64,000 bases of DNA from Macrostomum lignano (lineage: Eukaryota), in the NCBI GenBank assembly GCA_002269645.1, contig NIVC01002371.1, forward strand, positions 62,001 through 126,000, read 5' to 3'. The notes under the pieces are model-generated. The model was not told where the DNA came from, did not search any database, and was given only the letters and a program-made list of their open reading frames with translations. This document shows, piece after piece, positions 3,202-38,110 of the stretch. A program made the translations under genes and the position numbers. Position 1 is the stretch's first letter, and every line of letters starts with the position of its first letter.

Positions 3202-4201
3202 TTAGAGCGCGCCAACCCGACGAGCCAAGCCATGCACAGCCGCCCTGGCATCCGAGTCCCGAACAGATAGATAGCGAAACACTGAGTTGCCCTTCCAGTC
3301 GCACAGCTTCTTGATCATCGGCAGTGGAACACCGAGCTGCATGGCTGCCGTAGCGCCGCCCCGCCGCAGCCCGTGGCCAGTGAACTCGCGTGGCGACAAA
3401 CCCGCCGATGTGCAGAGCGAACGAAGCCGGCTATCAAACCTGCTAGCCGTCAGAGGCAACCATCCGCGGACGACCACGTGGAGAACAGGTGAACCGGACG
3501 CGGCGCCTGGCCGATTCGGTTTGTCCGTAGCTGCCGCTCGAGCGCACGGAACGGGCACAGGACACCCAAGCTTCCATCAGGCAGTTTCGGAAGAAACACT
3601 CGCTGAACTCGATCGCCAAACTGGTTGGTCTTCGAATGCCGCACAGTGAGCTCACAGTCGTACTCTGAGAAGACGATGCTCGATGCTGCCAGGTCGCACC
3701 ACAGATCGAGCTGCCCCGATTGCGTCGTCACATTCGCTTTTCGCAGCATACCCCACCAGGCTGCCAGAACTGCTGCCCAGAACGCGATGTCACTCTTCAG
3801 ACGTTGGTCCAGGTGGGCGTGTAGCTTGATGAGATCCGCGACTCTGAATGGCTCCCTTGAGCGCTGCTGCCGACTGAGACACCGGCGAAGACCACGAAGC
3901 ACCAGCTTAACCATCGGCGACTCGCACGGGTCCGACCGGCCGAGAGCTCTGAAGTACAGCGAGACCGCGTTAGCATACGCCTGGCAACTCCGAAAGGCTG
4001 ACAGCCGGGTGGACAGCTCGGCCAGGTATTCAGCCACGTGCACAGGCTCTGCCCGCAGCGGCGTCAGGTGCCGGGAACTGCAAAATCGCAGCCAAGACGC
4101 GAGCTGCGACCGGTAACTCCGCTTCGTGCGGGGCGCGTAGGCATTGCCCAGGATAAACGCGCAACGCTTGCTGAGGCGGTCGGGAGTCTGGCGCGGAGGG
4201 C
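3202..4201 (-). pseudogene. Tyrosine recombinase of the Ngaro element, frameshifted near 3460
   Basis: The YR frame opens at ~4201 (AYAPRTKRSY..W..FC), continues through LRKAN and HSKTNQFG, then shifts frame at ~3455-3465 to GHGLRRGGAT...DWKG...FRYL (catalytic R-K-HxxR-W-Y). There is no in-frame ATG. Confidence 0.85.
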
Positions 4202-7003: not shown

Positions 7004-8499
7004 TGCAACAATTGAGAAAAAAAAATCAATACGCGCTTGGCGGGTCAGCGACAGCCCGCACCGTATTAAATAAACGCCACCCAGGCCGCGGGCACGTGAC
7101 CAAGGCCCGGCCCACCACCCCCCCCCGCACCAACGCACAAGAGCCACGCCCCACTGGTTTAACACCCAACCAAGCTACGCCCGGTCGGACCATTAAAACT
7201 TACATGTACATGTACTAAGCATTGGGGGCAATGCGGACAAATCTGCCGCGTGACGGTGACGTAACTAAATGCGCTGCAGGAATAAAGCATTGCGGGCAAA
7301 CTTCGGCGGGCAAATCTCATGGACCAGTATAACCCCACAGAATAAACACAGAATGTTCAATCACGCATTTTTCATGAAACCGAATTAAAAATCGTCCACA
7401 CTACTTTTGTTGTGAAGTCTGTGGCCAGTAGTATCAACTAGTGTAAAATAATTAAGCAAAAAGTATCAAAGGCAGTAAAAGATCCCATTTGCAACGATCA
7501 AATGTAAAATCAGTCAGTCAGTTCATTTAGGAAGTTAAAACTTGAATCTTTAAAACTCCACTTAAACAGCATTCATTCGCATCAGCTTCTTCTCTTCAGT
7601 TCTCTTCATTCCTGTCGTGCGCCCTCGCCTTCTCTGCTGAGCCAGCTCCCTCTGACTTGCATCAGTGATGCAGCGAATTCTTGAAAACATCACTTTGGCC
7701 ACCAAAATAGAAGTTGTTAAATAGTAGTCTGTTCGATCTATGACGCTTTGCTAAAAGTACAGTGTACAACGTAGTAAGTGCATTGTCTGAATGAAGGGAT
7801 GGTTATATGAAGCTGGAATTCAACCCTAGGGACCCAAAATGGACAAATAATGCATTTTCAGAATCTAATGACAAAATAGTGCATTCTTGGTGCATTATAT
7901 GTACGTGCATTTTTAATGCATTTTTAGTAAAAGTTCTATCTACACTATTTAACAAAATAAGCATGAATTTAGTTCAAGATTGGCTTTATTGCGCATCTGT
8001 GTATTTATAAATTATACTTCCGTTGCTAACTTTGAAGAACAAATAATAAAACGTGGTGCGATAAAAATGCATTATTTTCTGTAACAATTATCAAATTACA
8101 AATGCATTTTTTATATCCAGCCGTAGCGAATTAGACCATCACAAATTGAAATTAAAATGGCGGTCTAATTGCGTGCTGGATTATTTTGTTGCTCGAAGCG
8201 AAATTCGTAATTAAATTTCTATTTCAGGTTCTTATCTAGCAAACAAACTTACATTCGTACGCAAAAATTGGGTCGCTTTTGTTATTTCTCTATAACATAG
8301 CTTGTTCAATCGATTTTGATTGTCGAAATAAAAGCTTTGTTTTCTTCACTATTTTATGACATCCTCTCAACAATTTAATTGCATTAATCAATCTGGTGTG
8401 ACAATTATTCCAATTTCTAATTATTCCAATTCAGTTAATATATTATTATTATAGGTTTGAATTTATTGACTTCAGACACTAAGAGTTGGTGGATCTTGA

Positions 8500-11400
8500 A
8501 TGGATCTTGCGGCTGGTTCAAGTAGGCGCTCTTCGAATAGAGTAGTGAAACCAGTGCAACGATTGGCAAATTCTGCTGCGTCATTTTATGATTCGAAGTA
8601 CCTACTATTCTTCATTCGAAAGACAAGAACTTATCATAACTTTTCCCGTGGCAGTCTTGCACTTAGCCATAATGAGCCTGATGTGAAATTCATTTTTGTA
8701 AGTAATTTTTTGCTTACTTACTAGGCCCAGGCCTAATCCTAGTAATTGTTACAAATGCTATTGCATATTGTATACAAAATTCTGCAGGATTTGAAAAAAT
8801 AAATAAATTGCTTGAGTGCATATGGCTTAAAATGAATGTAGTTTTGTGTGCCTAACTATCAAATATCTATTAACTCCTACAAATATATTTATTAGGGCCT
8901 AAAGTTAAATGAAGCTAAATAGTTTTTTATATTGTTTTACTAGTAGGCTGGGCTTCTATAGCCATATGCCTAGTTTAGGCCATGTAGGGAGTAGGCCCTG
9001 ATGCCCAACTATAGAACTAGTTAGGTATTTTTTAGTGAATTAGGCTTATTCTAAGATTTCATCTTTTTATAGTTTTAGTAATACTAGGCCAAGGCTGTTT
9101 AATTTGCAAAAGACTACTTTTTAGTGCTTGAAATAGGCTGTTTAGTTGCTATCAATGTTAGAGTATGATTAGCTAACTCATGCATAAAGAACTATGGTTG
9201 GTTTGGCTAGCTTTCCTTTCTTTTCTATATGTTCTCTATTCTAAGTATAGAGAGAATATATTGGGCTGTTAGGAAAATTCTGTCCGTTTTGACTAAAATA
9301 TGTTGGAGCGAGTTTTTATAGGAATGCAGCAGTGTTACTCAGTAAAATAATTGCCATCGCAATCGATGACCCTCTGCCAACGAGAGGGCAGACTTTGGAT
9401 GCCAGCTCTGTAGAAATCCTTGGGCTGTGATTCAAAAAAGTTAGTAATGCAGTCCTTGACCCCTTTGTCATCTTCAAACGTTTTCTCTTTCAGATGATGG
9501 TGCAGCGCTCGAAAAAGATGGTAGTCTGTAGGGGCCAGATCGGGGCTGTACGGTGGGTGGGGCAGCACTTCCCAGCCCAGATCCAGCAGCTTTTGTCGGG
9601 TCAAATTGGCGGTGTGCGGCCGAGCGTTGTCATGAAGGAAGCGAACATGCTGACGCCCTGGACGCTGTGTGTGGAGGCAGTCGGCCACATTCTGCAGCTG
9701 GTTACAGTAGAGCTCGGCGGTGATGCTGGTGTTGGGCGGCAGCAGCTCGAAGTATACAACTCCTTCACTGTCCTACCAACAGCAGAGCATCACCTTCTTA
9801 GGGTGCAGTGGGGCCTTTGGCTCTGGCTGTGGCGGTTTGCCGGCATCAACCCACTGGCGCTTGCAGTGTATATTAACGTACATCACCCACTTCTCATCGC
9901 CAGTGAGTATTGAGGCCAGCCAGTCTGTTGTTCTCTTGTAGGAGAGCAGTGAGGTGCAAATGTCTGCTCGGCTTTGACGGTCCCTGTCAGTCAGGTCATG
10001 GGGGGTCCACTGTCCGAGCTTGCTTTTCTTGCCCATGGCAGCCAGGTGTTCAGCGACTTGCACATGGGAGCACCCAAGAGTGGCTGCCAGCTCTCGTGTA
10101 GTCTGGTGCGGATTGGCCTCCACAAGTGTCCGCAGCAGCTCAGTGTCTATCTCAGATGGGCGTCCAGGGCGAGGTTCGTCAGCAAGGCTGTAGTCGCCGC
10201 TGCGAAAGCGATCAAACCAACGACGGGCTGTGCGGTCAGAGACAGCATCCTGGCCAAATGCACTGCACAGGCGTCGAGTCGATTCGGCTGCTGTAATACC
10301 TGCTAGAAAATCATATAGCATGCACTGCCTTAGAGCGATGCTGTTTAATTCAAAATTTCTGGCCATAATTGGGCGCTGAAAAGCAAATGACTTGGTTAGA
10401 ATGACCACAACTCTGGCTGTATATGCATACACAAGTATTGGATCCAACACAGCTTCATGATCCTCTGCATAGAAAAATAAAAAACGGACAGAACTTTCCT
10501 AACAACCCAATAGAATTTTGGCCATTTTTAAATGTCTTATTGTCTATTTTTTTAATATATATTTTGTATAATGTATTCATTTTCAAACTTGACTGCCTTC
10601 ATTGATTTTTATAACATTTTATATAGTGGTCTCAGTATGTTTATATATCTATTTATCTATGAGCTATTTTATTCCTATGCTAAGCCTAAGGTGTTCAATT
10701 CATAGGAAGGTCTATTTGCTGATAAGGTAGGCCCTATATTCTATCCAATAGCAAGTTTACTATTTGAACTATTGTCCAGTGCTTTAGTTTTCTATTTTAA
10801 TATTTCTTATACTTTTAGTTTTCCTAGTATTTTAATAGGCTATATTTGCCAACTCTATTAAGCTATCTAAAGTTTTATTTTAGTTAAGTTTGTCTATTTT
10901 TCCAATGGATTTATTCTCTTTAGCTTGTCTATCTTTCTAAAGGACTCTTTTGTTTAGTTTGTCTAACTTTCTAATAGGCTATATCTATTTTGTTAACTAT
11001 TCTAAAAAGAATTTTCTATTTAGTTTGTTTATAATTCTTAATTAAAAAATTAATTTGGTCTAATATTAGCTCAAAATCTAATAATGAATCACATTTTTAT
11101 TTTAGGGTGAGGACTACCCACTTGCTCTCAAGGATGGCATTTTCAATGGCATGTTCATTGCAGCTGAACCATGGTCAAAAATGATCTACCTTGAGAAGGA
11201 GCTTGATGCATTCATAACTGAAAACAAGGAGAACTCCGAGCTCTCTGATCATGTCCAGTCTCATATGAAAGTCTTCATGAGACAACAAGAAGACTCAAGT
11301 GATGAAGATGCAGGTGATATTGACGATTCGGATGATGATGAGACCTGGCAGCCTACTCCGCCTCCTACTCAGGTTTCTTTTGTAAGCCCAAGTCCAGTTT

Positions 11401-13109: not shown

Positions 13110-15506
13110 ATGAGTTCGTCGTCGGAAAGTCTGTCCTCTGGGTCGTCGGAAAGTCTGTCCTCTGGGTCGTCGGAAAGTCTGTCCTCTGGGTCGTCATATG
13201 TCTCGATGTCGGTTGATTCAAGTACACATTCGATTGACACATCCATGGGTGAATACAGCGATTCGAGCTCTTCCGCTGCAATTCAAGCAAACGTCGGCGA
13301 GCAACCGACTATTGCAATTCCTGCTGATGACGAGAATGAAGTGCAGGCAGCTGGTCCATCTGATATCGAGCACCCTGAAATATTTTCTGCGGATGAGGAT
13401 AGTAACCTTCTTTCTGTCTTTTGTATCCAAGGTATCTCTATGGAGGTCAAATGTGCCCTTCTAATGTTGTGGATGATCTTGTCGAACGTTTCCAAGAAAG
13501 CTGTTAAAAACATGCTTCGCCTCATTTCCATTCTGTCTCCTCGCGCTGCTTTACCTACATCTTACAAAGCAATGGAAGCGGTTCTGCTTCGTTCATTCAT
13601 TTTAAAACCGGACTTCGTTGTGAAAGTTTGTTTAGCGTGTCTACTTATAAACTGTAGTGAACATCCAGTCGACTCTTTCGAGGGACTATGGCTCTTAAAT
13701 GTAAACCATCAGGTGGAGCTTACAGTTGAAAGGCATTTAAATGATATTTTATCTTACCAGCGTGAGCTAAGGCGAGGATTTCAAACTGACATTCTGAACT
13801 CTGCTGTTAGCAATGAACTAGAAACCGGCTCATCTCCTGACATTTTTCACTTGTATTTTCTTCTTTCGGCTGACGGAGCAAACTTCTTTAAAGTTTCTGA
13901 AATGTCTGTGTGGCCTTTCTGTGCACTGTGCCTCAATTTGCCTGTTAGATTACGCCAGAAGTTTGTCAACATTATCACAATCGCTTTGTTTACCAATCGA
14001 GGAAAGCCGAATTTTGAAAAGTTTTTGCCTACTATTTTAAATCGCTTGCCTTCGTGTGTAAAAGTAAGGAATGTGACGTTTTTTCTTCACTTCTCGTTTT
14101 TTACCTGCGATTTGCCCGCTTTATCTCACCTTTTTGGAATCAAGCAATTCAACGGACAATTTGCTTGTCCCAGATGCATCCTACCTGGCAAGTCTCTAAA
14201 GGTGTCAGAAAAAGGCCAAGTTCGTGTCTTCCCCGCTGTCCATGGAATTCCGCTTCGAACTAATGCCATGCATGCGCAGCATCTCACAGTTCTCAAGGCT
14301 CAAGGGCTTAAGGATTATTTTGGAATCAAACGCGAAACTGCTCTTCTCAAAATCATTCGTTTTCCAGAAAATTTCATTGTTGATTCTATGCATTGTCTCT
14401 GGGAAGGTCAAGTAAAACACATTCTAGCCTTCTTGACTGATTCTAAGACTAAAAGCTGCAATCCCAATCATTACCGTGTGCTAGGCTCAGCATCTGTCAA
14501 TGTAATCGACTCTCAGATTATGCAACTGAAACTTCCCCAAGGTATTAGCAATGTTCCTCCAATTAGTCAGCTCTCACTTTGGAAAGCGAAAACATACAAG
14601 ATTTTTGCTCTGTATCTGTTTCCATCAATTCTGCTTCCACGAATCGAAAATCCCGAACTTAGGGGCCTGCTCCTTCTTCTTAATTCTATTTATAACTTGC
14701 TGTACTCGCAAAATTCTTGTGTTTCAACTTTAAAACGTCTGTGCAATATGTTTCTTAACCTGTGTCCTGAGTTTTTTGGCGAACGTGTTATGCTTCTTAA
14801 TTTTCATCTTCTCTATCATCTACCCGACCAGTATGAACGATTTGGTCCTCTGTATTGTGCATCAATGTTTCCCTTTGAGTCAGCTATGCATGGCTTTAAT
14901 ATGCTTCATTTTGGCAGTCGATTTCATGGAAAGCAAATTTCCGAAAAGTTTTTCTGGCTAAAAGTGCTATTGTATTCACTGCAACCTGCTGCAGGCTCCA
15001 ATCCCTCAATTTCTGATGCACTCCTTGTCATCGCTAAGCACTACTGCAATCCTCCTGAGCGCGAAAATCGAACTCTAGGCGCTTCTGGGGGTAAAATTTT
15101 AACAACCACTTCTGCGGATTGCACTTTAAAAACATGTAGTTCGTATGTCCTGGATGTATCAAATTCATATTTTGCTATTAATCATTTTGCCGATAGCAAA
15201 ATCTTTGGCTCTTTTCTGACTCCACAATGTCGTTTAATCGACTTACTGTTCAATGCTGTTCCGGATTTTACCAATATTGGTGCTAGTGCATCTGAACAAG
15301 CAATCTTTCTTGCTTTTTTTACATCTGATGTTCCACTCCGAAATATGCTTATCTTTACGAGTCAGGAACCCACTCGGGAAAATTACAATTGCATACGTCT
15401 CACTGATGTGGCTGCGAGGTGCATTCGAGTCGATGTCAACTTTCCGAACTTGCCATCAGGCAGTTTTTGTCTGGTACCCCTGTTGGAAGAGTGTGAGCAC
15501 GATTAG
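13110..15506 (+). CDS. EnSpm/CMC transposase, 798 aa, uninterrupted
   Basis: Motifs LSADGA...VWP, LNLP..R, CDLPA, FNGQFACPRC, VDSMH...EG and NFHLLYHLPDQYERFGPL...SMFPFES are typical of Tnp2-type CACTA transposases; the ORF lies within the TIRs. Confidence 0.9.
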   Translation: MSSSSESLSSGSSESLSSGSSESLSSGSSYVSMSVDSSTHSIDTSMGEYSDSSSSAAIQANVGEQPTIAIPADDENEVQAAGPSDIEHPEIFSADEDSNLLSVFCIQGISMEVKCALLMLWMILSNVSKKAVKNMLRLISILSPRAALPTSYKAMEAVLLRSFILKPDFVVKVCLACLLINCSEHPVDSFEGLWLLNVNHQVELTVERHLNDILSYQRELRRGFQTDILNSAVSNELETGSSPDIFHLYFLLSADGANFFKVSEMSVWPFCALCLNLPVRLRQKFVNIITIALFTNRGKPNFEKFLPTILNRLPSCVKVRNVTFFLHFSFFTCDLPALSHLFGIKQFNGQFACPRCILPGKSLKVSEKGQVRVFPAVHGIPLRTNAMHAQHLTVLKAQGLKDYFGIKRETALLKIIRFPENFIVDSMHCLWEGQVKHILAFLTDSKTKSCNPNHYRVLGSASVNVIDSQIMQLKLPQGISNVPPISQLSLWKAKTYKIFALYLFPSILLPRIENPELRGLLLLLNSIYNLLYSQNSCVSTLKRLCNMFLNLCPEFFGERVMLLNFHLLYHLPDQYERFGPLYCASMFPFESAMHGFNMLHFGSRFHGKQISEKFFWLKVLLYSLQPAAGSNPSISDALLVIAKHYCNPPERENRTLGASGGKILTTTSADCTLKTCSSYVLDVSNSYFAINHFADSKIFGSFLTPQCRLIDLLFNAVPDFTNIGASASEQAIFLAFFTSDVPLRNMLIFTSQEPTRENYNCIRLTDVAARCIRVDVNFPNLPSGSFCLVPLLEECEHD

Positions 15507-17487: not shown

Positions 17488-18205
17488 GCTCCTAGTAGCC
17501 AATTTGTTCAAATTTTAGTTAAAATTTAAACACGAATATAAAATACGATTGCTTATTTAATCGTTAAAAAATTGTACTATTCTGAGCCGGGAATGTGTTG
17601 TCTGTGGTAATTTTTAACAAAAACTAGGATATTATATCATATAATCTCCTCGAAATCAGGAGCAATCGAATTTAATATATGATAAACGCCGTTTAATTCA
17701 TCATAGTCTATGGTTAGAATATCCTCGGCTACAATCAGACAAACGCAGCCTCAGACATTCTAACCACAGAATGTGAATTAAACGGCGTTTATTATTTACA
17801 TAACTGCATGCAATCGATAAAGACATGATTATTTTGGTTCCGACTTGTAGATTGATTTTTTTGTAAAATCTTCATATATAGAGCAACTTTACCCATAAAC
17901 AAAAGGCAAATCGACAGCAAACTGCAAACTGTCAGTCGTGTCAAGTGTCAAAAGCCAAGGCTGCTCAGATAGGCTCAGATAGCAAACCATAAGTTGTCAA
18001 GAAAAATCATAAAAAGTGTTTCGCGGTTCTTCTCTCATTCTCAAAGTAGGTGCGCCCTGTGCCCCTAATTCCTGTAAAGGGAAATGAATATTCGGACAGC
18101 AGTTTTGGAAAGCGAGTTACTGACAGACTCGCTCTGGCATACACCAGAAGCATTAAACCAGTGTTTTCCCCAGTTTTTTTGCTGATTCTGATTTTTGCTG
18201 ATTTT

Positions 18206-18782
18206 TTTGCTGAGATGAGGGAAGGGAGATGAGGGAAGGGAGATAAGGGAAGGGAGATAAGGGAAGGGAGATAAGGGAAAGGAGATAAGGGAAAGGAGAT
18301 AAGGGAAAGGAGATAAGGGAAGGGAGATAAGGGAAAGGAGATAAGGGAAGGGAGATAATGGAAGGGAGATAAGGGAAAGCAGATAAGGGAAGGGAGATAA
18401 GGGAAGGGAGATAAGGGAAAGGAGATAAGGGAAAGGAGATAAGGGAAAGCAGATAAGGGAAGGGAGATAAGGGAAGGGAGATAAGGGAAAGCAGATAAGG
18501 GAAGGGAGATAAGGGAAGGGAGATAAGGGAAGGGAGATAAGGGAAAGCAGATAAGGGAAAGCAGATAAGGGAAGGGAGATAAGGGAAAGGAGATAAGGAA
18601 AGGAGATAAGGGAAGAGAGATAAGGGAAGGGAGATAAGGGAAGGGAGATACATGTAAGGGAAGGGAGATAAGGGAAAGGAGATAAGGAAAGGAGATAAGG
18701 GAAGGGAGATAAGGGAAGGGAGATAAGGGAAGGGAGATGCATGTAAGGGAAGGGAGATAAGGGAAGGGAGATAAGGGAAGGG
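18206..18782. repeat. Purine-rich 14-bp minisatellite (GGGAAGGGAGATAA)n
   Basis: Tandem units read directly; explains the SLISLPLSPFPY ORFs. Confidence 0.95.
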
Positions 18783-19264
18783 ACTTTTAACCTCAATCAC
18801 CTCAATCGTACGCTGATACCAGACAACAAAGTAAACAAAGTAGTTACTCGTAATTAGTGTCTTTTTGTGATGGGCTACTAGCTATATAACATTTGTGTCA
18901 AATTTACGGTGTAACAATTGCTGTATAAGTCTTTCAAGTGGTTTTAAAATCTAGCGGAAATATTCATCAACTACAGTGTATGTACATGTACTTCGCACGC
19001 TCATAGCTTGATACGATTTTTATTACTGCTAGCTACAGCTGCAGGTTAATTGTCATCTTTACTGCTACGTGTGCCGTGTATACTCAGGCTTGCTAAGAAA
19101 AAAGGAAATTGAAGATCATTAAGTTTCAATTTAGTCAACTAACATTTTAATTAGTTTGCAACAATTTGACAATACAAAAACTTGCGACACAAAAGTACCT
19201 TGCAGCAATCGTGCAACATTTTACGAAATATGATAAATTCTTAAGTCGGTATATTGATAGTTTG

Positions 19265-19564
19265 TTAATCATAGTACTCTTGAGTACCAGGCGGGTTACC
19301 ACCAGGTGCGCAGTTGCCCATCTTCGATAGTATCGGGTTGCATTTTTTCGAACAACAGTCATTGTCGGACTGGCAGAGACGGCCGGTCTTTGTGCAGAAC
19401 TTGGGCGGACAGGCGCGCGATCCGAGACCTGCTTTGACGGGTGAGTAGTATATGAGAAACATGTGCGCAATATTTTTTTGAATTAAAAACACATCTATCT
19501 AAGCTTTCTAACTGAGCTTACCGAAGAACATGACAATGGCTAACAGCATTATGAAGTACTTCAT
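19265..19564 (-). CDS. Secreted knottin/ICK (conotoxin-like) peptide, paralog A, 68 aa
   Basis: Exon 1 19564-19522 (MKYFIMLLAIVMFF, GTAAG donor); exon 2 from 19428 (CAG acceptor, phase 1) to TAA at 19265. Product: MKYFIMLLAIVMFFGLGSRACPPKFCTKTGRLCQSDNDCCSKKCNPILSKMGNCAPGGNPPGTQEYYD. Confidence 0.85.
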
Positions 19565-19662
19565 CGCAAAGAAGTAGGTCTGCTTGCTTGTTGCTTTAGA
19601 TCGCAAAATCTAGTATAGCTAGGGTTGTGTATGCAGAGAATTGTTTCAGTATAAATACCAAA

Positions 19663-19669
19663 CTTATAT
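19663..19669 (-). promoter_or_regulatory. TATA-like box ~100 nt upstream of knottin A
   Basis: TATAAG on the minus strand; the same motif sits at the same distance upstream of paralog B (24454-24461). Confidence 0.55.
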
Positions 19670-21940
19670 CGGCTCTGTCTAGTGTGGAAAGAGTTTGCTG
19701 TTGATTGTCTATGGCCAAAATACAGTTCGATTGGATTAATCTTCATTCTGCAAGCTGTGTTATCTATGCTCGGGTTATCAGTTCAGGATTATATGATAGA
19801 AATGTAATTATATAATGAATTATAATATTTCTGTTTGTGTTTTGAACCTAGACATTTCAACTGGCTTCATTACGGCTGATCAAGTCTTTCATTATAAAGT
19901 CAACAAGGAGCTGGTCACACTGTTTGCTAAACATTATTCTATGGCCTACCCGAGCCCTAATGAACGTCCAAGGAACGCCATTATTCCAGGCTTCCAATGC
20001 GCATTTCAACCATATGATGAGGACGCACTTTTTCCCAAATCCCGCGCTAGCACATGGGCTCTAAACTTACTTGCCTACTAACAGTGGGCAGTGGGCATTT
20101 TTATCCTTTTTCTGCGAATTTTCATAGAATCTATACTAGATATAATGTCTGGTCATACTAGTAGTCATAATAACATAGGCGCAGCTTTTTGGGTCATAAA
20201 TCATCGCTTTCAAAGTTGGTCTGACAGCCACCTGCGCCTCACTCAGTGTTGAAGCGGGCGCCAGATGGTCTGAGAGGATGCGGGCGGTAGCTTTTTTCTC
20301 ATCATTTTGACAGGCCATCAAGATTTATGAGGTCAGAGCCTATTGTTTGTGTTCACTCAAGCGTGTGACAGCTTTGACAGCTATGCGTTTTACCCCTAAA
20401 AGTACTTTGGGATTAGCGATTAGCGATTTCTCTTCATTATCTTCACTTTCTATTTAATAAGAGCTTTCTAATGTATATTTTTTCATTAATTTCTGTCAAT
20501 CCTACGCGAAAAGTCATAAATCATTTTGTTGCGATTTTGAGTGATTTATGGCCGCACCTGTCATCTTTTTACGACCCTGTGGGAACTGATAGGATCTCTC
20601 GGTCACGTGATTCTGGGTGGCAACAAGCTTAGCCAATCAGAAAATTCGGCGCTCATTTTAACAAAACGGCTCAGCCAATCAGAATCGACGTGTTCCATTA
20701 TAACAAACTGCGGTCCAGTTGGCGGCTATTTAAACCGGTGTTTTTGGCCCGCTCGGACTCAACTTTGGCTCGGGCCCAGCGCGCAACTTCTGGTTCCCGG
20801 AGCACGACCGTCGTTTCTTGATCCCCGGATTGCGACTTCCCCCATCATCATCAAGGACGAGTCCCCCGGTCGACAGCAGCGAACATCCAGTTAAGAGCAT
20901 CACCTGCTAGCTAACAGCGAAGATTGTGACAGCATCATCCCGAGTCTACAGCTGCAGAGCATCGAGCCGATTCGGTCACTGTGGATTACCTGGTCTCCGG
21001 CTGTTGAGTTTCTGATTGGTTGGGTGAGAGGCTACCTAGACTTGCTTGATTGGGTGATCCCTTATCTGTCCCCTGTTGCAGTAGCTGAATTAGGCGCACA
21101 CTTTTGCTCATTTTGTTCAATAGTGCTGTTGCTGAGGCAGAAATCATTCAATAATACTGCTAGTAGTCTAAGACTCCAATTCAATCTGAAGTGTGAAGTG
21201 AACTAAGGAGAAGGTTAAATCTAACAGTTATTTTTATCGGTTTTATTTCTTTGTTCGCCGATGGCTCAGATGAGTAGCTAAGCTAGTAGGCGCCGGTCAC
21301 AGTGGACCAATGGCAAGGCAGTTCTCAGTCGACCAATCTATCAAATCAGTGAGCAAAACTGCCAGAAGTGCAGAATCGGCGCCAGAGATGTACTTTGTGC
21401 ATTCTAGGGTAGCCAAGCGGCTCGGGTAAATGAATCATGCGGTCTCTGAAGTTCGAGTTAGTCTATCATCAGCGCTATGAGAGGCTAGTTGGCGCGTTGA
21501 AGGCCAAAAGTACATATCTTCTGTAAAGTGTGCCTCTCCTTCTCGGGTTCTCGAAGAAAATTCGAGAAAATAAAAAAGTTCCTAGAAAATAAAACCCGCT
21601 GCTCCTGAAGAAGCTAGATAGCATCGGAGTACTACCTATCGATTTGCCTGAAAATGAACCTAAAACGTTGCCGTGACTTGGTAGGGTTGCTGCCACCTTG
21701 GTGTGCGGACTCGACGCGTCGGCAGAGTTGTCTATCCGTCACCTGAAAGAAAAATAACAAAGTCGCTCGGAGCAAAGGCAAATCTGAAAAATGTCTCGAC
21801 AGTCGATCGTCTTAGTAGAATGCTGCTCGAACCTGAAAACCTGTAAAACCTGAAATGAGAGAGCTCGGAGGCAGAGGCAGCTCCGGTCGAGCCCAGGCAG
21901 GACGACGCGATCTGGAGAAAAATGGCTCGCAGATGCTTCG

Positions 21941-22096
21941 TATTTATAGCCGAGCGGACCCCTAAAAGTCACGTGAGTTTCATGCGGTGAGCGCGTGAAA
22001 CTTCCTTATTTGGGCATTGGAATCATGCGGGCGACGCGTGATCCAAGGCCAACTTCCAAATAAGGCAACCCTGTCACGCAGCAGTGGCGTGACTCA
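21941..22096 (-). promoter_or_regulatory. Candidate immediate-early-type promoter: TATA, E-box, two CArG/ETS sites, AP-1
   Basis: TATAAATA 21941-21948 (minus strand), CACGTG 21970-21975, CCTTATTTGG 22004-22013, CCAAATAAGG 22056-22065 (each overlapping a GGAAG ETS core on the minus strand) and TGACTCA 22090-22096. Confidence 0.55.
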
Positions 22097-24079
22097 AGGT
22101 CAGTGGCCACGCACAGAGTGCGTGCACAGTCACGTGCTTAGTCTGTGCTAAAAATAGAATCGCGATCTAGTCCCAGCAGTGTCCCTTATCATCGGCTATG
22201 ACTTCGAGATTGACAGCAAAAAGACACTAGTTGGCAGGTAAGTGCAAAGCCCCTTCTAGTCGGAAGCCCGTTTCGAGAGTCCCGGTGTGGTGAGCCAGGG
22301 CGCACGGGCTGGTGGCAGCAAGTTAGTTGATCTGCGGATTAGCTAATTTCTACTTTCAAAATTCTCCCTGCTCGTCTCTCGCTGTCCCTCTCCTAGCTAT
22401 AGGACCTAGACTGCTCGCCACACGATCAAGCTACCATGGGGCTGACCATCTGACAGGAGTGGGGGGGCCAGGTCTCTAATTGATTTATTTCTGAGCCTAA
22501 GGCCCGAAGGCTTCCCTAACAAGGAGCCCGAAGGTCGAAACCCATCACATAGACAAAACAGTTTATTTAACAGAAGTGACGATAAATTATATAAATACAC
22601 TAGGCAATTGAGAATATGCTCGTACATACATGTAAATATAAAATATGCCTATAACCTGGCCCTGCCTTAGAAAACTGACCCTTTAAAGAGTCAATTTAGT
22701 CTAGGAAAATCATAGTCTACGGTCGACCGTATAGCCTCTAACTCTTCCCTTTAGTCTTTCATTCAAAATGTGAATAATGATCGTCGAATTGCTAAACAAT
22801 GAAAACAACTATGCGGTACGGAATGATCGGTACGCTGTACGCAATGATCGCGGGACTTGTTTAGGCCATAGAATAATGAACGGGTCGCGGAAGGGGATCA
22901 GACCTCACCCTCCCAGGGGCACGTCGGTCCGCCCTAGATGGAGAATTCGTGGTCCGATAGCAAGGTCCCACTGTTCTAATCCCAACTACGGCCAATGAGT
23001 TTTGAAGGTAGGGACTGCTTAAAGTATAGATCTACAAATTATTACACCCTAAATACCCTTACGACCTTCTAGCAGCTTCTGTTTTGTATCCCTGCTGCCC
23101 TACATGTATTAACATTCTACTCACTAGCCTGCGCATGCTTAAAATATTAAGAAATCAAAGTAGGACAACTGGGTTATGATTTTCACCTGACAAGTAGCTC
23201 AGCTGCAGATACAACTACTATTCGGGAATGAATGATTGAATTATTGCAAGGCGGGATCGGGATCCCGATGGTCAATCCCAGGATTTTCGAATTGTAATTT
23301 AGAATTTAGGGTTGGAAGGGAACTGGGGTAGTGGGGGGAACAAAATCCCGGGATTGTATTCCCTAGTTGAGACTCTAAAAATTAGGGTTCTGTAGAATTC
23401 TCATCTATTAGCGTTGCGACTTGCTTAGTTTAGTCATCTGCATTCACTTGTCTCTGTTTACGATCTGTTTCCTCTCCTCTGTCTAGCCCAGTCTTGTTAT
23501 TCTTTATCTCTCTCCCTCGATGCCTTCTGATTGGCTCTTTAACTCGCCTCTTTCGTTCGTCGCGCACCTCCACCCCCTCCTTTTCTTATCTTCCCTGACC
23601 CCCCCTAATTGAGTTATATATTGGGCGTTTCACACACCGGAAATTTCACAAACCCGAAGTTTAAAAAAGCCATAAACCCGAGGTACAGCTCTGCCACATA
23701 TAGTCTATGGTAAAATTATAGTACTGAATGTGCTGCCCATATAGCAGGGGTAAATAAAATACTGTTAGCTCTTAGTTAGCTCGTAGTTTTTTAAAATTTG
23801 ATTAAAAAAACACGAATATTATAACTGCATGCAATCGATTAATACATGTACATTATTATTTTGGTTCCGACCATAGACAAGTAGAAGCAGCAACATCCAG
23901 ACTTTCGTAAATTATTCATACATGTATATAGAACAACTTTACCCACAAACAAAAGGCAAATCGACAGTAAACCCTGTAAACTGTCAGTCATGTCAAGTCA
24001 AGAACAATGATAAATTCTTAAGTCGGTATTAATGGTTTAGTCATAGCTATAGTACTCATGACCATGCAGGCGGGCTGCC

Positions 24080-24352
24080 TCAAGGTACGCATTTGCCCTT
24101 CCTCGATGACGGTCTCGACCGTTTGCACTTCTCCGAGCAACAGCTGTAGTCGGTATCGCACATACGGCCATTATAGATGCAGTAATGCCGACAAGCGCGC
24201 GATCCAAAACCTGCTTTGGCGGGTGAGTAGTAGGGGATATCAGTGAGAAAAATTTGCGCAATAGTTTATATAAATTACAAACACATCTAAGATTTCTAAC
24301 TAAACTTACCAAAGACCATGACAATGGCTAACAGCATTATGAAGTACTTCAT
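24080..24352 (-). CDS. Secreted knottin/ICK (conotoxin-like) peptide, paralog B, 57 aa
   Basis: Exon 1 24352-24310; exon 2 24210-24080; intron position and phase match paralog A. Product: MKYFIMLLAIVMVFGFGSRACRHYCIYNGRMCDTDYSCCSEKCKRSRPSSRKGKCVP. Confidence 0.85.
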
Positions 24353-25708
24353 CGCGAAGAAGAATGGCTGCTTGCTGATTTATTGCTCTGTTATAGATAG
24401 CGAAATCTGTCCAAAGTAGCGCTGAGCAGAGAAATGTTTCAGTAAATTCCAAACTTATATAGCCTCCGTGTAGCGAAAACCCAGATCAGAACTTGGTGTT
24501 GATTTGTCTATGGCCCCCGCCTAAAATGCGACTGCCGCTTCCTTAGTTAAATCACCCTACACGTACTTCTTTCAAGTTAGCAGCCAATCGGGAAGTCGGA
24601 TTAATCTTTATTTTGCAAGCTGCGTCGTCTATGGCCGGGTTAAGTCAGTTCAGGATTAAATACATGTGTGTACATACGATTAGTTCAACTACTCTATAGT
24701 TTTAGTCTATGGGTGAAATAGCGAATTTTTATCAGATAGATACCGCGTACATTCATGCTGTCCCAATTATTGAATTTAAAATTATTTAGAATAAAAAACT
24801 CTAATCAAAGTTACAAGCCCCGTGCAGCTTTAATATTCCCTAATGTATATTTCTCCAACTTGTTTTACTGCAAATATTCAACGCCATTTACAGTACACTG
24901 ATGAATGTCGATCTTAGGATTGTCATGTCAGTCCTAATTTGTCATATAGTTTGTCATCTACTGTTTGTCTGCATTTAAAAAAATTACATTGACATTCATT
25001 GCCAATAACACTGACAATACAAAAATCATACATACAGTGACTTTTTATTTTGTTCTTCTTTGAATCAATTGTATTCAAAATGCAAAATACAGTGTACTCG
25101 ATCTAACAGACAAATTTGTGTAGGTACATGTATTAATTCCATTTCGATGCATAAAGTTCCTACACACGTTCCTAAGTTCCTATATATATATTCATAGTTA
25201 CTGCATATAACTTTATGGTCTCCAAAAAATGACACGACTTTTTGCGTTTTACGTCCTACTTGTGGTCCTTTATGCAGTATACATGTACAAGAAATTCGAA
25301 CTTATATTATTAGTACATGCATATAATTACATTAGGGCCAAGAATCCCGTAGGATAAACCACTAATGCTTACAAGCTTTATGTAACATTTTCAAGACAAT
25401 TGAAAAAATGAAGTCATGGCTTAAACTCATAGCTTAAATAAAAGAGAAAAGATTGCGGACTATAATTGTAAATTTTTTATACAGTATAACAAAACGTTTG
25501 TCACAGTTTGAAAACTATGATTGAAAACATGAAGAAACTTAATGCTCATGGTGATTTTTTAAAGTTTAGTTTAAAGTTAATCAAAAAATTCTTATTATTA
25601 CGTTTGTATTCCATAACAATGTTTGCAAATTTGAATACGTCAGAACTCTTTTTTCTTTTATACTTAAAAGGCAAATTGGATTACCACTGAACGAAGAAAC
25701 GCTTAAAC

Positions 25709-26589
25709 ATGGACGCTAAATCAAGTGAGTATTGCGCTTTGCGATATATTATCGTTTAGACTATTATCCGAAAGAGTTTGTTTAACGTTGATACTACTCT
25801 ATGTGAATGTACTGGCACTGGGCTTGGTCGCTGGAACTGTGCTCTCGAAATGAGCCATTTTTGAAACCTTATTTTGCAATGAATGTAAGAATGAAACCAA
25901 TCTGTGATTTTTATAGTCCTAACACCAAGCTCGTATTGCTGTGGCGTGGACGAATAACAAGTGCCTTGAATTTACTTGTTGATCTTAAATGTAGGCCAAA
26001 AATTTTCTGAAAAAAAATCAAAAGTTTTTCTTATTTTTTTCATATTTTCTTAACATTTTATTTAATGTTTTTAAGAAAAAGTACTGGAGTTTAAGGTAGC
26101 AATATTCAAGCTGTAAATATTTTATAGCTTTGTTATTTTCAATTTTAGCTTACAACATTTTTAGTATATGGATATTATTCTGAAGCTGATGAATGATGTA
26201 ACAAAATAAAAATTACTAACTTTTTAGACACAGATTCAACAGCGGAACCTGCTGCTGCCCCCGCACCAGCCGTCACTGGAGACCCAGCCGATGCCAGTCA
26301 AGATCAGCCCATGCCAGCAGCTGAGCAACAGCAGCAGCCACCCACAGTGCCTGAAGGCCTAGCTCGAATGTCAGATGCTGAACATGCTGATGCTGCTGCA
26401 AGTGCTTCAGCCAAGAAGCCTAGAGTTGCAGTTCAAGCCCTGCCAACCCGAGCCTACCTGGACCAGACAGTGGTCCCTGTGCTGCTGCAGGGCCTGGCAG
26501 TGCTATCCAAGGAGCGACCACCAAATCCAATTGAATATTTGGCTGCTTTTTTGCTCAAGAATAAGGATCAGTACTCCGCAGACAAGTGA
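25709..26589 (+). CDS. DPY30: Protein dpy-30 homolog (COMPASS subunit)
   Basis: C-terminal [42 protein letters not shown] is the DPY-30 motif. Exons 25709-25724 (MDAKS, GTGAGT donor) and 26228-26589 are phase-compatible. Confidence 0.93.
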
Positions 26590-27640: not shown

Positions 27641-33998
<6,358 letters not shown>

Positions 33999-36499
33999 CT
34001 GAAATAACAAATTGTTTTCATTTTGTACATTTGCTTGCTCTTAGTAGGGGGTTAATAAGAATTTGTAGACTAAGTACCTCGAGAAAATATATTTCTTACA
34101 ATGTAATAGCCTAAAGTGCACAAATATGGTGCAAGGTACTACAAAATAAGTATTCAAATCTAGACTTTCAAACTATTATGATAAAATATAAAGTATTATT
34201 CTTTGCATTTAAGTTGCTAAAATATGGATATAGTAAAAATTTTTACACCTTCAGCACCTTTTTAAGCAAGAAATTTTAGATTTTTATATATTCATAAAAT
34301 TTATATCTAATATACTGGTATATATTTTTTTAAACAATAAAGCTACAGTTACTTAGGCACACTATACCTCAAAGAAGTATCTTAATTGATTTTTATTAGC
34401 ACCCTAAATAAGCTTAATGAGATTATCATTGCAAATTTATTCTTTTAAAAACATTTTAGTTTCTTTGTAATTTTTGTGGCTCTGTATACATACTTTTATA
34501 TAAATGACATACATACAAATACTAACATATGAAACTATTTAAAATGCTGAAGAATAATATTCTATCGTGTATATAGTTGTAAAATATTTGGTACGTTAGG
34601 AACTATTATACATCAAGGTTAAGGTTAGTAAACGTAGAGTTAAAAAACGAATGTGAATGTCTAATAACAGTGGTGGGAGCCGGAGGAAGACGAAATGACT
34701 AATAGAAATATAGCTTTTAATATAAGGAGAAATGTTTAACAAGGGTAGATAAAACTATACACGAAACATTGAATGGTGACAGTTTCTTCTTTTATGGCAT
34801 AGAATTTAGTTAATAGACGAATACTACGTTTATAGACATTCTGATTTCTAACCTGGTTAATAATAATCAAGCAGGTTAGATCAAGTTGTTTTCTTATGAA
34901 AACATTCATTTAAAAATGTAACATTGCAAAAGGTATAACAAATGTTTTTTGCATTTTTAATTTTAAAATTTACTAAAGCAGAACATTTACCTTCTTAATC
35001 TACTTCCATTTTTTGCTTTAAATTTTTTCACTATTTATTGAGTTCTTGACACCTGTTGGCGTGTTGCCACTTGCCTCCTGTTTGTGAAAGACAACTTAGC
35101 AAGATAGTATAAAATAGAATCTGGAAAACGGCCTTAGACTCTAGAGCTAGAGCAAAAGTCCTTTTGCTAATAACGACCTAGTTTCAGCGAAGTGGGTTTC
35201 GGTGAAGCATTTTTTGGCAAAACAACCTGTTAGTTTTTAATATATTTTTTGGTAATATAGCCTCTATTATATTATAGGCCCAAGGCCCTATTTGTGTAGA
35301 TAACTTGCAATTTCAAAATGAGAAAAAATGTAGGCAGGCACCCTATATTATTCTATTATAATAATTTAACAGTATTGCTCTGTTTTTTTAATAAGTATAA
35401 TACAACTATGGAAAATAAGTTTCTAATCTATCAAATCAAACAGTAAGTAACATGATTCTAACTTAAGAAGATTCCTAGGGGCCTATTGCTTTAAAATTTA
35501 ACCTTATATTATAATAAAGATTCAAGATGTATGCTAACCAGGTATAAACTTATTTAAAATATAATAATGTTTTTAAAATTTAGGATTTTTGTTTGGCAAG
35601 AATTAATCTTTGGCTAGCTAACTAGCTTGCCATATATAGAATAGTAGGCAATATTTGTCTATAACATGGTGATATGAATCATGATAGAGAACTTTAGCTT
35701 TTGGCATTTGCTTAGGCCTATTTATATCCTTTGGGTTCTTTAACTCCTTTAAAAATCATTTGCACACACTTTCTATTTTTTTATTGCTTTATTTCCTCAC
35801 CTTTATTTTCTTATCTTAGGCCTATTTATCTATCAGTATTGGCCTATTATCTCATTTTCTTTTCTTTTTTTCTTTGACTTTAGTTTTTACTTCCATTTTC
35901 TCTCTTATCTTTTCTTATATCTTTTTTTCTTCTCTTTTCTCTTCTTTTTTCTCTTTGCTCTTTCCCTTTTCATCTCTTTTTTCTTAGAGTTTTTGACCAA
36001 AAGTGCTACTTAGGCCTATCTAAAAAGTAAACCAAAGCAAAAATTAATGTAATTTTAATTTTGGGTAAATAAAGGTAATATTTATGACTATACAAGCTGT
36101 TGAAACCTGTAGATTTTGAATTAGGGGAATTCCAATCCCCAGAAATGTTTTTGCACATATTCTTAAATCTGAGGCAAACAAAAACTTGTTAATAGTTATA
36201 ATAAGATAGAGGTCAATATAAAATGGAGTACATCTGTGTATAATTAAGATTTGAACCAAACATTTGATATTGTTAGCTAGGGTGTTGCGTAGAATATCAG
36301 GTAATGTCTGTCTGACTCTAAAAATATATTTTGGCAAACTCTGGCCTCTGTGCTCTGATTGTCCCTACATTCCTTGGATCCTTTGAAACTTATATCTTCT
36401 CTCATACATGCCCAACCTCAAAATTTCACCTGTCCAATGTGACTTAGTTCCTCTTGATTGCAACTTAGTTCCCCTGATTGCAACTTAATATTCCATTTG

Positions 36500-37082
36500 T
36501 ATATGAATTTTTTTGCCCTTTTCTCTTTTCTTTTCTTTTTCTTTCTCTCTCCTCTTTCCCTCTCTCTTCTCCCTCCTTTCTTTTTCTTTTTCTTCTCCTT
36601 TCTTTCTTACAATTTTTCCTTTTTTGCATTTTTAATTTTGCGACTTACCTTGGCTGGCGGCTATTTTACCTGTCCAGTTCAAATGGGTCAGATGGGTATT
36701 GGGCATATATGTATTCTCTTCTGTTTCCTCTCTTCTCTCATCCCTTGTTTCTCCTTTCTTTTCTTTCTTCTCTCATCTTTTCTTTTTTTCTTCTTTCCTA
36801 TTTTCTCTTGTATCTTCCCTCATCTCTCTTCTCTTTTATCTCTCTTATCTTATCTCTTCTCTTCTTTTTCTCTCCTCTTCTCTCTACTCTTTTCTCTCTT
36901 CTGTCTTTCCCTCTTCTCTCATTTCTTCTTTCTCCTCTCTATTCTTTTCTCTCTCTCCTCTCTCTCATCTACTCTCTCATCTCTCCTTTCTCCTCTATTA
37001 TGTCTTCTAATTTCTCTCTGCTCTCTACTCTCTTCTCTCCCCTTTTTCTCATTCCTCACTCTCCTCTTTCTCAACATTTCCC

Positions 37083-37180
<98 letters not shown>

Positions 37181-37800
37181 TTTCTCTCTTCTCCATTCTC
37201 CTCTTTCCTCTCTTCTCTCCTCACTAACTTCTCTCTCCCTTTGTCTCACCTCTCATCTCTTATTTCTTATCTCTCCTCTTTTCTCTCCACTCCCATCTCT
37301 CATCTGTTCACTCTCGTTTCTGTTCTCTCATCTCACCTCTCTCATCTGTCATCTTTACTCTCTTATACTTGTATGTTCTCTCTCTCTACCTCATCTCTAT
37401 CTTCTCTTTTCTTTCTAAACTCTCTCTCTTATCTCTATCTCCTCTTTTCTTTCTCAACTCTCTCTCATCTCCATCTCCTCTCTTCTCACTCCTCTCTCTC
37501 CCCACTCTCCCCCCCCTCTTATCTCCTCTCTTCTCTATCCTTTCTAATCTCCTCTCAATCCTCATTTATCTCCTCTCTGCTCTCTCATCTCTATTCTCTT
37601 CTCACTTTTATCTACTCTTATCTCTCATTGATCCTCTGTCTCATCTCTCCCCTCTTCTCTCTCCCTCTTCTCACCCCTACTCTTTTCTCTCTCTCCTCTC
37701 GCTTCTTCCTCTCCCATTATCTGCTCTTTCCTCACCCCCTCATCTCTCCTTTTATCTTCTATCTTTTCTCTTATCCTGCTCTCACCTCTCCTCTCTTCTA
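36500..37800. repeat. Polypyrimidine (CT-rich) low-complexity tract including (CT)n
   Basis: Read directly; the long Leu/Ser/Phe ORFs here are artefacts. Confidence 0.95.
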
Positions 37801-37809
37801 ACAGTTCAT

Positions 37810-38110
37810 ATATCTTCTAGGTTGCGCCCAAGCATGCTATTCCTTCTTTTCCACTCTGATCTGGCCCACAGCCATGAGCTGGATTCTTTATCTGGCCTTT
37901 GAGGTTAAAGTCTACCAATCCCTGCTTCAAAAGCCAGTTTGTGAGATGTAGTACTCTTATGGTTGTTATCATTTCTCATGCTTTAATCACGTCATCTTTC
38001 TGGCCAATTAGTAGCCCTAAGAGGAGTTTGTGTATCTCCAGCTCTACCACAGTTTGCAGCAGTCTAACAACCAAGGAAATACAGTTTGCATTTCTTAAGG
38101 AGGCCATTTA
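37810..38110. mobile_element. Degenerate interspersed repeat, second copy at ~40200-40430 (possibly LINE-derived)
   Basis: Shared blocks CAGCCATGAGCTGGATTCTTTA, AAAGCCAGTTTGTG and CATCTTTCTGGCCAATT occur at both sites; the family is not identified. Confidence 0.5.

Follow-up and report, generated by a model that had tools for sequence, protein, structure and literature searches.

The gene pair and its second copy

The sequence analysed here is a 64-kb window of the flatworm Macrostomum lignano (NIVC01002371.1 of assembly GCA_002269645.1, record positions 62001–126000). Two small genes in this window, called gene A and gene B, encode cysteine-rich peptides with the six-Cys array of the inhibitor cystine knot (ICK), one domain per gene, for which a knottin fold is predicted. 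The initial annotation had described two 2-exon genes on a common strand about 4.8 kb apart, in an animal not regarded as venomous. Both gene structures were confirmed on the minus strand, and the description of the animal holds for this flatworm. The ATGs are located at 19564 (A) and 24352 (B) with a spacing of 4,788 bp, and the interval 19265–24352 runs from the stop of gene A to the start of gene B. The features of the pair are as follows (window coordinates).

Gene A
19658–19669, minus strand: TATA-box motif ATATAAGTTTGG, about 100 nt upstream of the ATG; the identical 12-mer is found upstream of gene B, and a promoter role is presumed
19522–19564, minus strand: exon 1, coding part, MKYFIMLLAIVMFF plus the first base of the split codon; n- and h-regions of the signal peptide
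19432–19521, minus strand: intron, 90 nt, phase 1, GTAAGC...CAAAG, GT/AG; alternative acceptor at +3 nt (NAGNAG)
19265–19431, minus strand: exon 2, (A)GLGSRA, then CPPKFCTKTGRLCQSDNDCCSKKCNPILSKMGNCAPGGNPPGTQEYYD, stop TAA
19310–19396, minus strand: six-Cys ICK core, C-x6-C-x5-CC-x3-C-x9-C
19230–19252, minus strand: conserved 23-mer ATACCGACTTAAGAATTTATCAT of the 3' untranslated region (UTR), identical in gene B

Gene B
24449–24460, minus strand: TATA-box motif ATATAAGTTTGG, matching the gene A 12-mer
24310–24352, minus strand: exon 1, coding part, MKYFIMLLAIVMVF plus the first base of the split codon
24214–24309, minus strand: intron, 96 nt, phase 1, GTAAGT...CAAAG(CAG)
24080–24213, minus strand: exon 2, (A)GFGSRA, then CRHYCIYNGRMCDTDYSCCSEKCKRSRPSSRKGKCVP, stop TGA
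24089–24181, minus strand: six-Cys ICK core, C-x6-C-x5-CC-x3-C-x11-C
24007–24029, minus strand: conserved 3'UTR 23-mer, identical to that of gene A

The predicted precursors are MKYFIMLLAIVMFF(A)GLGSRACPPKFCTKTGRLCQSDNDCCSKKCNPILSKMGNCAPGGNPPGTQEYYD for gene A and MKYFIMLLAIVMVF(A)GFGSRACRHYCIYNGRMCDTDYSCCSEKCKRSRPSSRKGKCVP for gene B. Read-through of the intron meets stop codons in both genes, and thus splicing is required. The motif TACTACTCACCCG of the gene A intron is conserved. As the acceptor is a tandem NAGNAG (CAAAG/CAG/GT), isoforms with and without one Ala are possible; the second acceptor is the one used in the UniProt models. The precursors start with the n-region MK, followed by a 12-residue h-region and the c-region GLGSRA, which has small residues at −3/−1 (G-L-G or S-R-A). 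The h-region of gene A, YFIMLLAIVMFF, shows a Kyte–Doolittle grand average of hydropathy (GRAVY) of 2.79. The secreted-type start proposed earlier agrees with this strongly hydrophobic, signal-like N-terminus. There is no space for a pro-region, because the first Cys directly follows GLGSRA, which adjoins the hydrophobic core.

The Cys spacing proposed in the initial annotation, with x9 (A) or x11 (B) in the last loop, is correct, and so are the mature sequences quoted there. A seventh conserved Cys was overlooked. It is located 4 residues (A) or 3 residues (B) upstream of the array (SRA-C-PPKF-C in A, SRA-C-RHY-C in B), and both peptides have an odd number of Cys (seven). Counted from Cys22, peptide A has 48 residues and a computed pI of 8.2; its core is mildly basic, and its tail is acidic and Tyr-rich. 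Peptide B has 37 residues, a computed pI of 9.2 and a net charge of +6, and is strongly basic and Tyr-containing. The stop of gene A lies 14 codons after the last Cys. The stop of gene B follows the core immediately, 12 codons earlier than that of gene A, and the sequence beyond it (24030–24079) is still alignable to the sequence coding for the C-terminal tail of A. Thus, either B lost the tail or A gained one.

Using the DPY-30 gene at 26311–26589 as an anchor, a second, homeologous block, 96–99% identical, was located on NIVC01000702.1. It carries the same intact pair, A' and B', with an ATG spacing of 2,520 bp, so that four intact copies are present in total (A, B, A' and B'). A' differs from A by one synonymous change, the protein being identical, and B' differs from B by R47T. 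One further feature lies between the genes.

20016–22548, no strand assigned: insertion of about 2.5 kb, absent from the NIVC01000702.1 block, which is 94–99% identical elsewhere and joins ...caaccata/gacaaaac... directly; outside both genes

No second copy of this insertion is present in the window. It includes two AGCCAATCAGAA boxes, then a TATTTAAA motif, and several CACGTG sites, and might be a mobile element or a promoter-carrying insertion.

The first 36 nt of the coding sequence, identical in A and B, are present only twice in the window where 0 occurrences would be expected. When all six frames of the window were searched with a relaxed regular expression for the Cys array, only the A and B sites were detected, and 30 shuffles gave none. 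No further copy was found in the window, which extends 19 kb to the left and 40 kb to the right of the pair, nor in the 5 kb downstream of A'. Rfam and tRNA scans of the window gave no match.

A HMMER profile search with the A/B exon-2 profile against 1.84 billion representative proteins gave 15 matches, and the best two are M. lignano proteins (UniProt taxid 282301). One of them, A0A1I8H5G0 ("Toxin", 57 aa), is B'; A0A1I8HBK8, also named "Toxin" and belonging to the same cluster, is exactly the gene B product made via the second acceptor. The other, A0A1I8H9W7 ("C2 domain-containing protein", 511 aa), has the gene A precursor as its first 64 residues. The earlier description of the genes as unannotated is therefore incorrect, although the "Toxin" names are automatic. 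The word "family" also has to be reduced to two paralogs, each with one near-identical duplicate, as no other M. lignano cluster was present among the representatives searched. In the same search no match was found in other flatworm proteomes at E < 1e-3.

A word-index homologue search, a method too insensitive for peptides of 30–60 aa, gave no match for the spliced A precursor; it returned only the B cluster for the A/B alignment and one unnamed metagenomic protein for a 27-sequence domain alignment. The exon-2 open reading frame (ORF) and the UniProt B' protein have no record in the gene collection. A literature search on Macrostomum knottin, conotoxin or cysteine-rich peptides gave no relevant paper and none on A or B. 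As single-domain ICK peptides of a free-living flatworm, A and B already have computational annotation.

The possibility that gene A forms the first exons of a long C2-domain gene, as modelled in A0A1I8H9W7, was ruled out, since gene A has its own in-frame stop and the rest of the model is unmatched in the window. Only 19 C-terminal residues of that rest match the window (526–582), on the opposite strand and 19 kb away. These results indicate that the model is chimeric. The fusion uses a cryptic GT donor just before the last four codons of A, and the model should be split.

Predicted fold and relatives of the cysteine domain

The A core was modelled by AlphaFold2 with a predicted local distance difference test (pLDDT) score of 90.8, using a 38-domain alignment selected by cysteine pattern. 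The Protein Data Bank (PDB) neighbours of the model are nearly all knottins, the other three being colipase chains, with template modelling (TM) scores of 0.5–0.75; one of these fold neighbours is SOTI-III, a knottin that inhibits trypsin. When the 38-domain profile was compared with solved structures, the best matches were 6px7 "Venom polypeptide" (3.8e-7), maurocalcin (7.5e-5) and imperatoxin A (3e-4), followed by omega-atracotoxin, Alo-3, kappa-conotoxin PVIIA and nemertide alpha-1. Pfam gave only sub-threshold matches for A and B. The toxin families matched are all ICK families, and in the case of A the best is Toxin_18, followed by PhTx and the calcins. The ICK framework claimed in the initial annotation thus stands, with the six-Cys array and loop lengths in the knottin range in the two paralogs and the two homeologs. 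As a prediction, the assignment to the knottins has good support, and the disulfide connectivity would be I–IV, II–V and III–VI, in which the third bond passes through the ring.

The remaining matches of the exon-2 profile are mostly repeat-domain proteins with the signature C-x3-G-x2-C-x4-[DE]-CCS-x2-C-xn-C-[VA], from mosquitoes, parasitoid wasps and unidentified Logan and ENA sources. The best non-flatworm matches (E 7e-10 to 3e-4) are insect multi-ICK proteins, namely U5EN92 of Corethrella, named 'putative phenoloxidase inhibitor protein', and LOC proteins of Uranotaenia, Microplitis and Cotesia. Alignment of the flatworm pair with an insect-only profile by hhalign gave a probability of 97.5% and E 8e-12, the insect set having been picked by the same similarity. 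The insect proteins carry 3–7 domains on linkers, whereas each flatworm gene carries one domain, and the seventh upstream Cys is an addition of the flatworm peptides.

According to these matches, the peptides might be endogenous enzyme regulators that inhibit phenoloxidase/tyrosinase or a protease. Phenoloxidase/tyrosinase is used in flatworm eggshell tanning. The name of the Corethrella relative points in this direction, the other near relatives being multi-ICK proteins of mosquitoes and parasitoid wasps; the basic charge and the Tyr content of peptide B also fit, and SOTI-III is a fold neighbour. A precedent is the phenoloxidase inhibitor (POI) of the housefly Musca domestica, a knottin on which the 'Phenoloxidase inhibitor' family of the KNOTTIN database is based (PMC2238874). 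The insect name, however, is itself an unverified annotation, the flatworm peptides have a single domain instead of 3–7, and no oxidase gene is co-located with the pair. We consider a role in enzyme regulation improbable.

Arthropod venom knottins (6px7, which we take to be an assassin-fly asilidin, maurocalcin, imperatoxin A and omega-atracotoxin-Hv1a) share the six-Cys framework and the DCCSKKC core with the flatworm peptides, with TM scores of 0.5–0.65. In contrast to them, the flatworm peptides fall under the cut-offs of the Pfam calcin, PhTx and omega-toxin models and have no venom-gland context. In the case of the scorpion calcins (PF08099 Toxin_27), A scores 14.9 bits and B 12.9 bits against a cut-off of 25.

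The cone-snail O-superfamily (framework VI/VII) shows the same C-C-CC-C-C order with x6, x5-6 and x3 spacing, and also combines a conserved signal with a variable mature region. Gene A scores 23.4 bits against PF08087 Toxin_18, just below the cut-off of 24.3, and B gives no match; neither A nor B matches PF02950 Conotoxin. The flatworm genes differ in having no propeptide, in being two rather than dozens, and in a ratio of replacement to silent divergence (ω, see below) that does not exceed 1. The cone-snail signal sequence is, we presume, unrelated to the flatworm signal. The initial annotation had compared the framework with that of cone-snail and spider toxins and of baculoviral peptides; the nearest sequence relatives are arthropod ICK domains rather than cone-snail toxins, and the Pfam conotoxin models missed the peptides.

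The peptides might also be neurotoxins that act on ion channels, strictly as conotoxins and spider toxins do, and are directed against prey or predators. They have the framework VI/VII array, and the best Pfam and PDB matches are venom peptides (conotoxin O, PhTx, calcins, omega-atracotoxin and nemertide alpha-1). The UniProt name "Toxin" agrees with this role, but it is automatic, all the Pfam matches stay below gathering cut-offs, and two paralogs without a propeptide do not make up an arsenal. M. lignano is a diatom grazer, so that a role in prey capture is unlikely, and it is not known to have a venom apparatus. A neurotoxin function is thus regarded as quite unlikely.

The comparison with baculoviral conotoxin-like peptides made in the initial annotation is apt at the level of the predicted fold (TM 0.77–0.80). 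In Ctl-1 and Ctl-2, as in A and B, the signal peptide is directly followed by a single six-Cys ICK domain. These proteins are the closest in the viral model library, with a root-mean-square deviation of 1.2 Å and 35–38% identity over 31–32 residues, the Foldseek E-value being only 0.7–1.6. Baculoviral Ctl genes are viral and intronless, whereas the flatworm genes are cellular two-exon genes in two homeologous blocks.

Predicted flatworm knottins are not new. A 'Trematoda' family was carried by the KNOTTIN database in 2007 (PMC2238874), and Schistocephalus solidus secretes a UPF0506 knottin with the motif part C-x6-C-x5-CC-x3-C-x4-C (PMC8400842). The platyhelminth UPF0506 proteins resemble A and B in being predicted flatworm knottins of unassigned role. 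They differ in coming from parasitic Neodermata and in often having a double array, and UPF0506 (PF11703) gave no match for A or B at E <= 10, although the insect relatives do match it at 1e-6 to 1e-8. The CRP-I peptides of Mytilus provide a non-venomous lophotrochozoan case, with a conserved signal, a hypervariable knottin mature peptide and clustered paralogs, and their role was still unclear after assays (PMC10138031). The CRP-I family, in contrast to A and B, numbers about 50 genes, which vary by presence or absence and have three coding exons and a propeptide with a dibasic site. Between CRP-I and A/B, no relationship in sequence was detected.

Divergence between the two paralogs

The duplicated block covers about 570–650 bp. 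It begins about 230 bp (A) or 310 bp (B) upstream of the ATG, the TATA box being included, and ends about 35 bp (A) or 75 bp (B) past the stop codon. Divergence was calculated from the single A–B pairwise comparison as Jukes–Cantor K, and the nonsynonymous (dN) and synonymous (dS) divergence and their ratio ω were calculated by the Nei–Gojobori method.

Exon 1: K 0.05 (2/43 nt)
Intron: K 0.13
TATA-to-ATG region: K 0.19
3' flank: K 0.22
Cys-domain nucleotides: K 0.36
Signal region: dN 0.04, dS 0.25, ω 0.17
Cys domain: dN 0.41, dS 0.60, ω 0.68
Cys domain, non-Cys codons only: dN 0.58, dS 0.60, ω 0.97

The near-identity of exon 1 noted earlier was confirmed, the two differences being F13V and one synonymous change. 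According to the ω values of 0.17 and 0.68, the signal exon is indeed much more conserved than the Cys domain. The mature regions had been described as sharing only the Cys, G-R and S-x-K; the sequences on which this was based are right, but the sharing is understated, as the cores have 6 Cys plus G, R, D, S, K, S and G in common. All seven Cys are kept, against only 8 identities among the 28 other aligned residues of the Cys domain; if all positions drifted equally, the chance of this would be 0.29^7, about 2e-4. This indicates strong constraint on the scaffold.

The dN of 0.41 in the Cys domain is 2–3 times the divergence of the intron, 5'UTR and 3' sequence (0.13–0.22). Replacement divergence of the Cys domain is greater than the divergence of the intron (Fisher p = 0.0025) and of the pooled non-coding sequence (p = 0.004). 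Toxin genes are known for a signal of this type. The excess over intron and UTR divergence hints at the diversifying selection proposed in the initial annotation, whereas ω, at 0.68 or 0.97, does not exceed 1. As the dN/dS of exon 2, which that annotation had asked for, is not well below 1, the idea survives as a suggestion and not as a demonstration.

A serious alternative, whose probability we place somewhat below even, is that the signal peptide and the splice signals are kept by ordinary purifying selection (or by 5' gene conversion) while the non-Cys loop residues drift nearly neutrally under relaxed constraint. In this case no diversifying selection is needed. The ω values fit such drift, and the dS of the Cys domain is as high as the dN; patches of the promoter/5'UTR are 58–62% identical and thus as diverged as the Cys domain (62–73%), and B would have lost its C-terminal tail through a stop codon. 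Against drift stands the same two- to threefold excess of Cys-domain dN over non-coding divergence. In addition, sequence that is better conserved lies to either side of the Cys domain, and thus simple 5' conversion is no explanation. With only two sequences, positive selection is inseparable from relaxed constraint, and the conserved signal and fast loops are consistent with either.

Gene conversion is not needed to account for the identity of exon 1, because the signal-region dS matches the non-coding divergence. A simple 4.8-kb tandem repeat unit was also ruled out: the shared part is about 0.6 kb per gene plus about 150–180 bp downstream, and about 2.5 kb of the spacer consists of the insertion present on NIVC01002371.1 only. 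The downstream part consists of 17800–17958, located downstream of A past a satellite, which is 73% identical to 23821–23998 just downstream of B. This likeness indicates that the original duplication unit was longer and that the 3' flank of A was later interrupted. The satellite (18212–18783) lies about 0.5 kb from gene A on the downstream side and consists of about 40 copies of the 14-bp unit GAGATAAGGGAAGG with 90% matches.

Another possibility is that the genes are non-functional, being chance ORFs, pseudogenes or prediction artefacts. The chimeric nature of A0A1I8H9W7, the model containing gene A, would fit an artefact. This possibility is opposed by the four intact copies, the canonical splice sites, the TATA motif, the retention of all seven Cys and the low ω of the signal region, and also by the absence of the array from the shuffled sequences and the specific similarity to a recognised domain family. 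We consider it very improbable.

Possible roles and surrounding sequence

The explanation we prefer, which we rate at about an even chance, is that A and B are tandem-duplicated, intact M. lignano knottin genes whose putatively secreted products may be host-defence effectors. Exon 1 would code for most of the signal peptide, and exon 2 for its end and then directly for one ICK domain, no propeptide being present. The products would be secreted mini-proteins of about 4.3–5.2 kDa, which may be secreted co-translationally, cleaved after GLG or SRA and folded into a cystine knot. Between the paralogs, the cystine scaffold has been kept constant, as have the signal peptide, the splice signals and the motifs of promoter and 3'UTR; the inter-Cys loops have diverged at a rate that is about neutral or higher. 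The last loop, which differs most (9 residues and neutral in A, 11 residues and highly basic in B), probably determines specificity.

If the peptides work as other single-domain knottins do, they might bind a target protein or a membrane outside the cell by means of their variable loops, displayed on a scaffold resistant to proteases. The role could then be antimicrobial, anti-parasite or predator-deterrent, with release from epidermal, gut or gland secretions, and paralogs A and B would be sub- or neo-functionalised. A defence role is preferred on the basis of priors from non-venomous invertebrates, in particular Mytilus CRP-I (PMC10138031), and of the cationic character of peptide B.

Several points weigh against this explanation. 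The high-confidence fold model depends on the choice of the 38 domains by cysteine pattern. When AlphaFold2 was run on the two exon-2 peptides alone, the pLDDT was 60 and Foldseek gave no meaningful matches, and the Foldseek E-values of the A-core model are weak (0.2–5), as expected at 33 residues. The similarity between the insect and flatworm domains may reflect homology or convergence, as likeness between Cys-rich mini-domains can be convergent. Seven Cys imply either one free or intermolecular Cys, or a cleavage site or pairing unlike the canonical knot. The exact A68, A69, B58 and B'58 precursors are absent from a 15-billion-protein collection, the UniProt gene models aside. The defence role itself is carried over as a prior from other invertebrates.

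The peptides could instead be reproductive, that is, seminal-fluid or prostate-gland peptides that evolve fast under sexual selection or conflict. The prostate glands of M. lignano express many short, rapidly evolving secreted proteins. The products of A and B are small, secreted-looking and lineage-restricted at the profile-search threshold given above, and the paralogs diverge fast. On the other hand, A and A', and likewise B and B', differ by at most one residue, and no published prostate transcript could be linked to the genes. A reproductive role is thus unlikely in our estimation.

In the case of the seventh Cys, the residue may mediate dimerisation. A bolder proposal, which we regard as a long shot, is that this Cys, unpaired and at or beside the N-terminus of the mature peptide, links homo- or heterodimers by a disulfide into a bivalent knottin from two single-domain genes, and that the domain is an ancient protostome ICK domain related by descent to those of POI, asilidin and the calcin type. 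In function, such a dimer would correspond to the insect proteins with several domains and to double-knot toxins. If this is true, a genetically tractable non-venomous model, with RNA interference (RNAi) and transgenesis, would be available for the ancestral role behind venom knottins.

The knottin fold is one of the main scaffolds on which venom toxins, antimicrobial peptides and enzyme inhibitors are built, and it supplies leads for drugs and insecticides. The common origin of the animal ICK families and the role of such peptides in non-venomous animals are debated. As RNAi and transgenesis are established in this laboratory flatworm, a locus of just two knottin genes would be convenient for approaching a non-venom function, and codon models of the conserved-signal/fast-loop pattern could be fitted over the numerous Macrostomum species that have been sequenced. 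In practical terms the value is modest: UniProt already lists the genes, with A mis-modelled and the names automatic, and the family is small.

The other features of the window are listed below.

3450–7165, minus strand: long retroelement ORF (RVT_1, E 1e-16); a second ORF, 3450–4043, has no Pfam match
9773–10450, minus strand: Mariner/Mos1-type transposase fragment (HTH_48 and a partial DDE domain)
13110–15506, plus strand: uninterrupted 798-aa ORF with DUF1258 and a Ser-rich repetitive N-terminus; no gene-collection record; may be transposon-related
26311–26589, plus strand: single-exon DPY-30 homologue, 92 aa (Pfam Dpy-30), 2 kb upstream of gene B; the protein is identical on both homeologous contigs
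28065–28466, about 29900–32600, 36400–37900 and 41300–44300: large simple or tandem repeat tracts
49233–50753, minus strand: intronless cytochrome P450 gene
53236–54612 (plus strand), 55784–56770 (minus strand) and 57410–58675 (minus strand): at least two Pfam-confirmed innexin genes; 57410–58675 is a possible third, its ORF being interrupted by a (CLSI)n microsatellite-like tract

The repeat tracts comprise a 32-bp unit present 12.6 times, a (TAGA)n-type repeat (IYLS repeats), a CT-rich tract with a GC skew of −0.6 and a satellite of about 3 kb with an AT skew of 0.59. The copy number of the 32-bp array differs between the two homeologous contigs.

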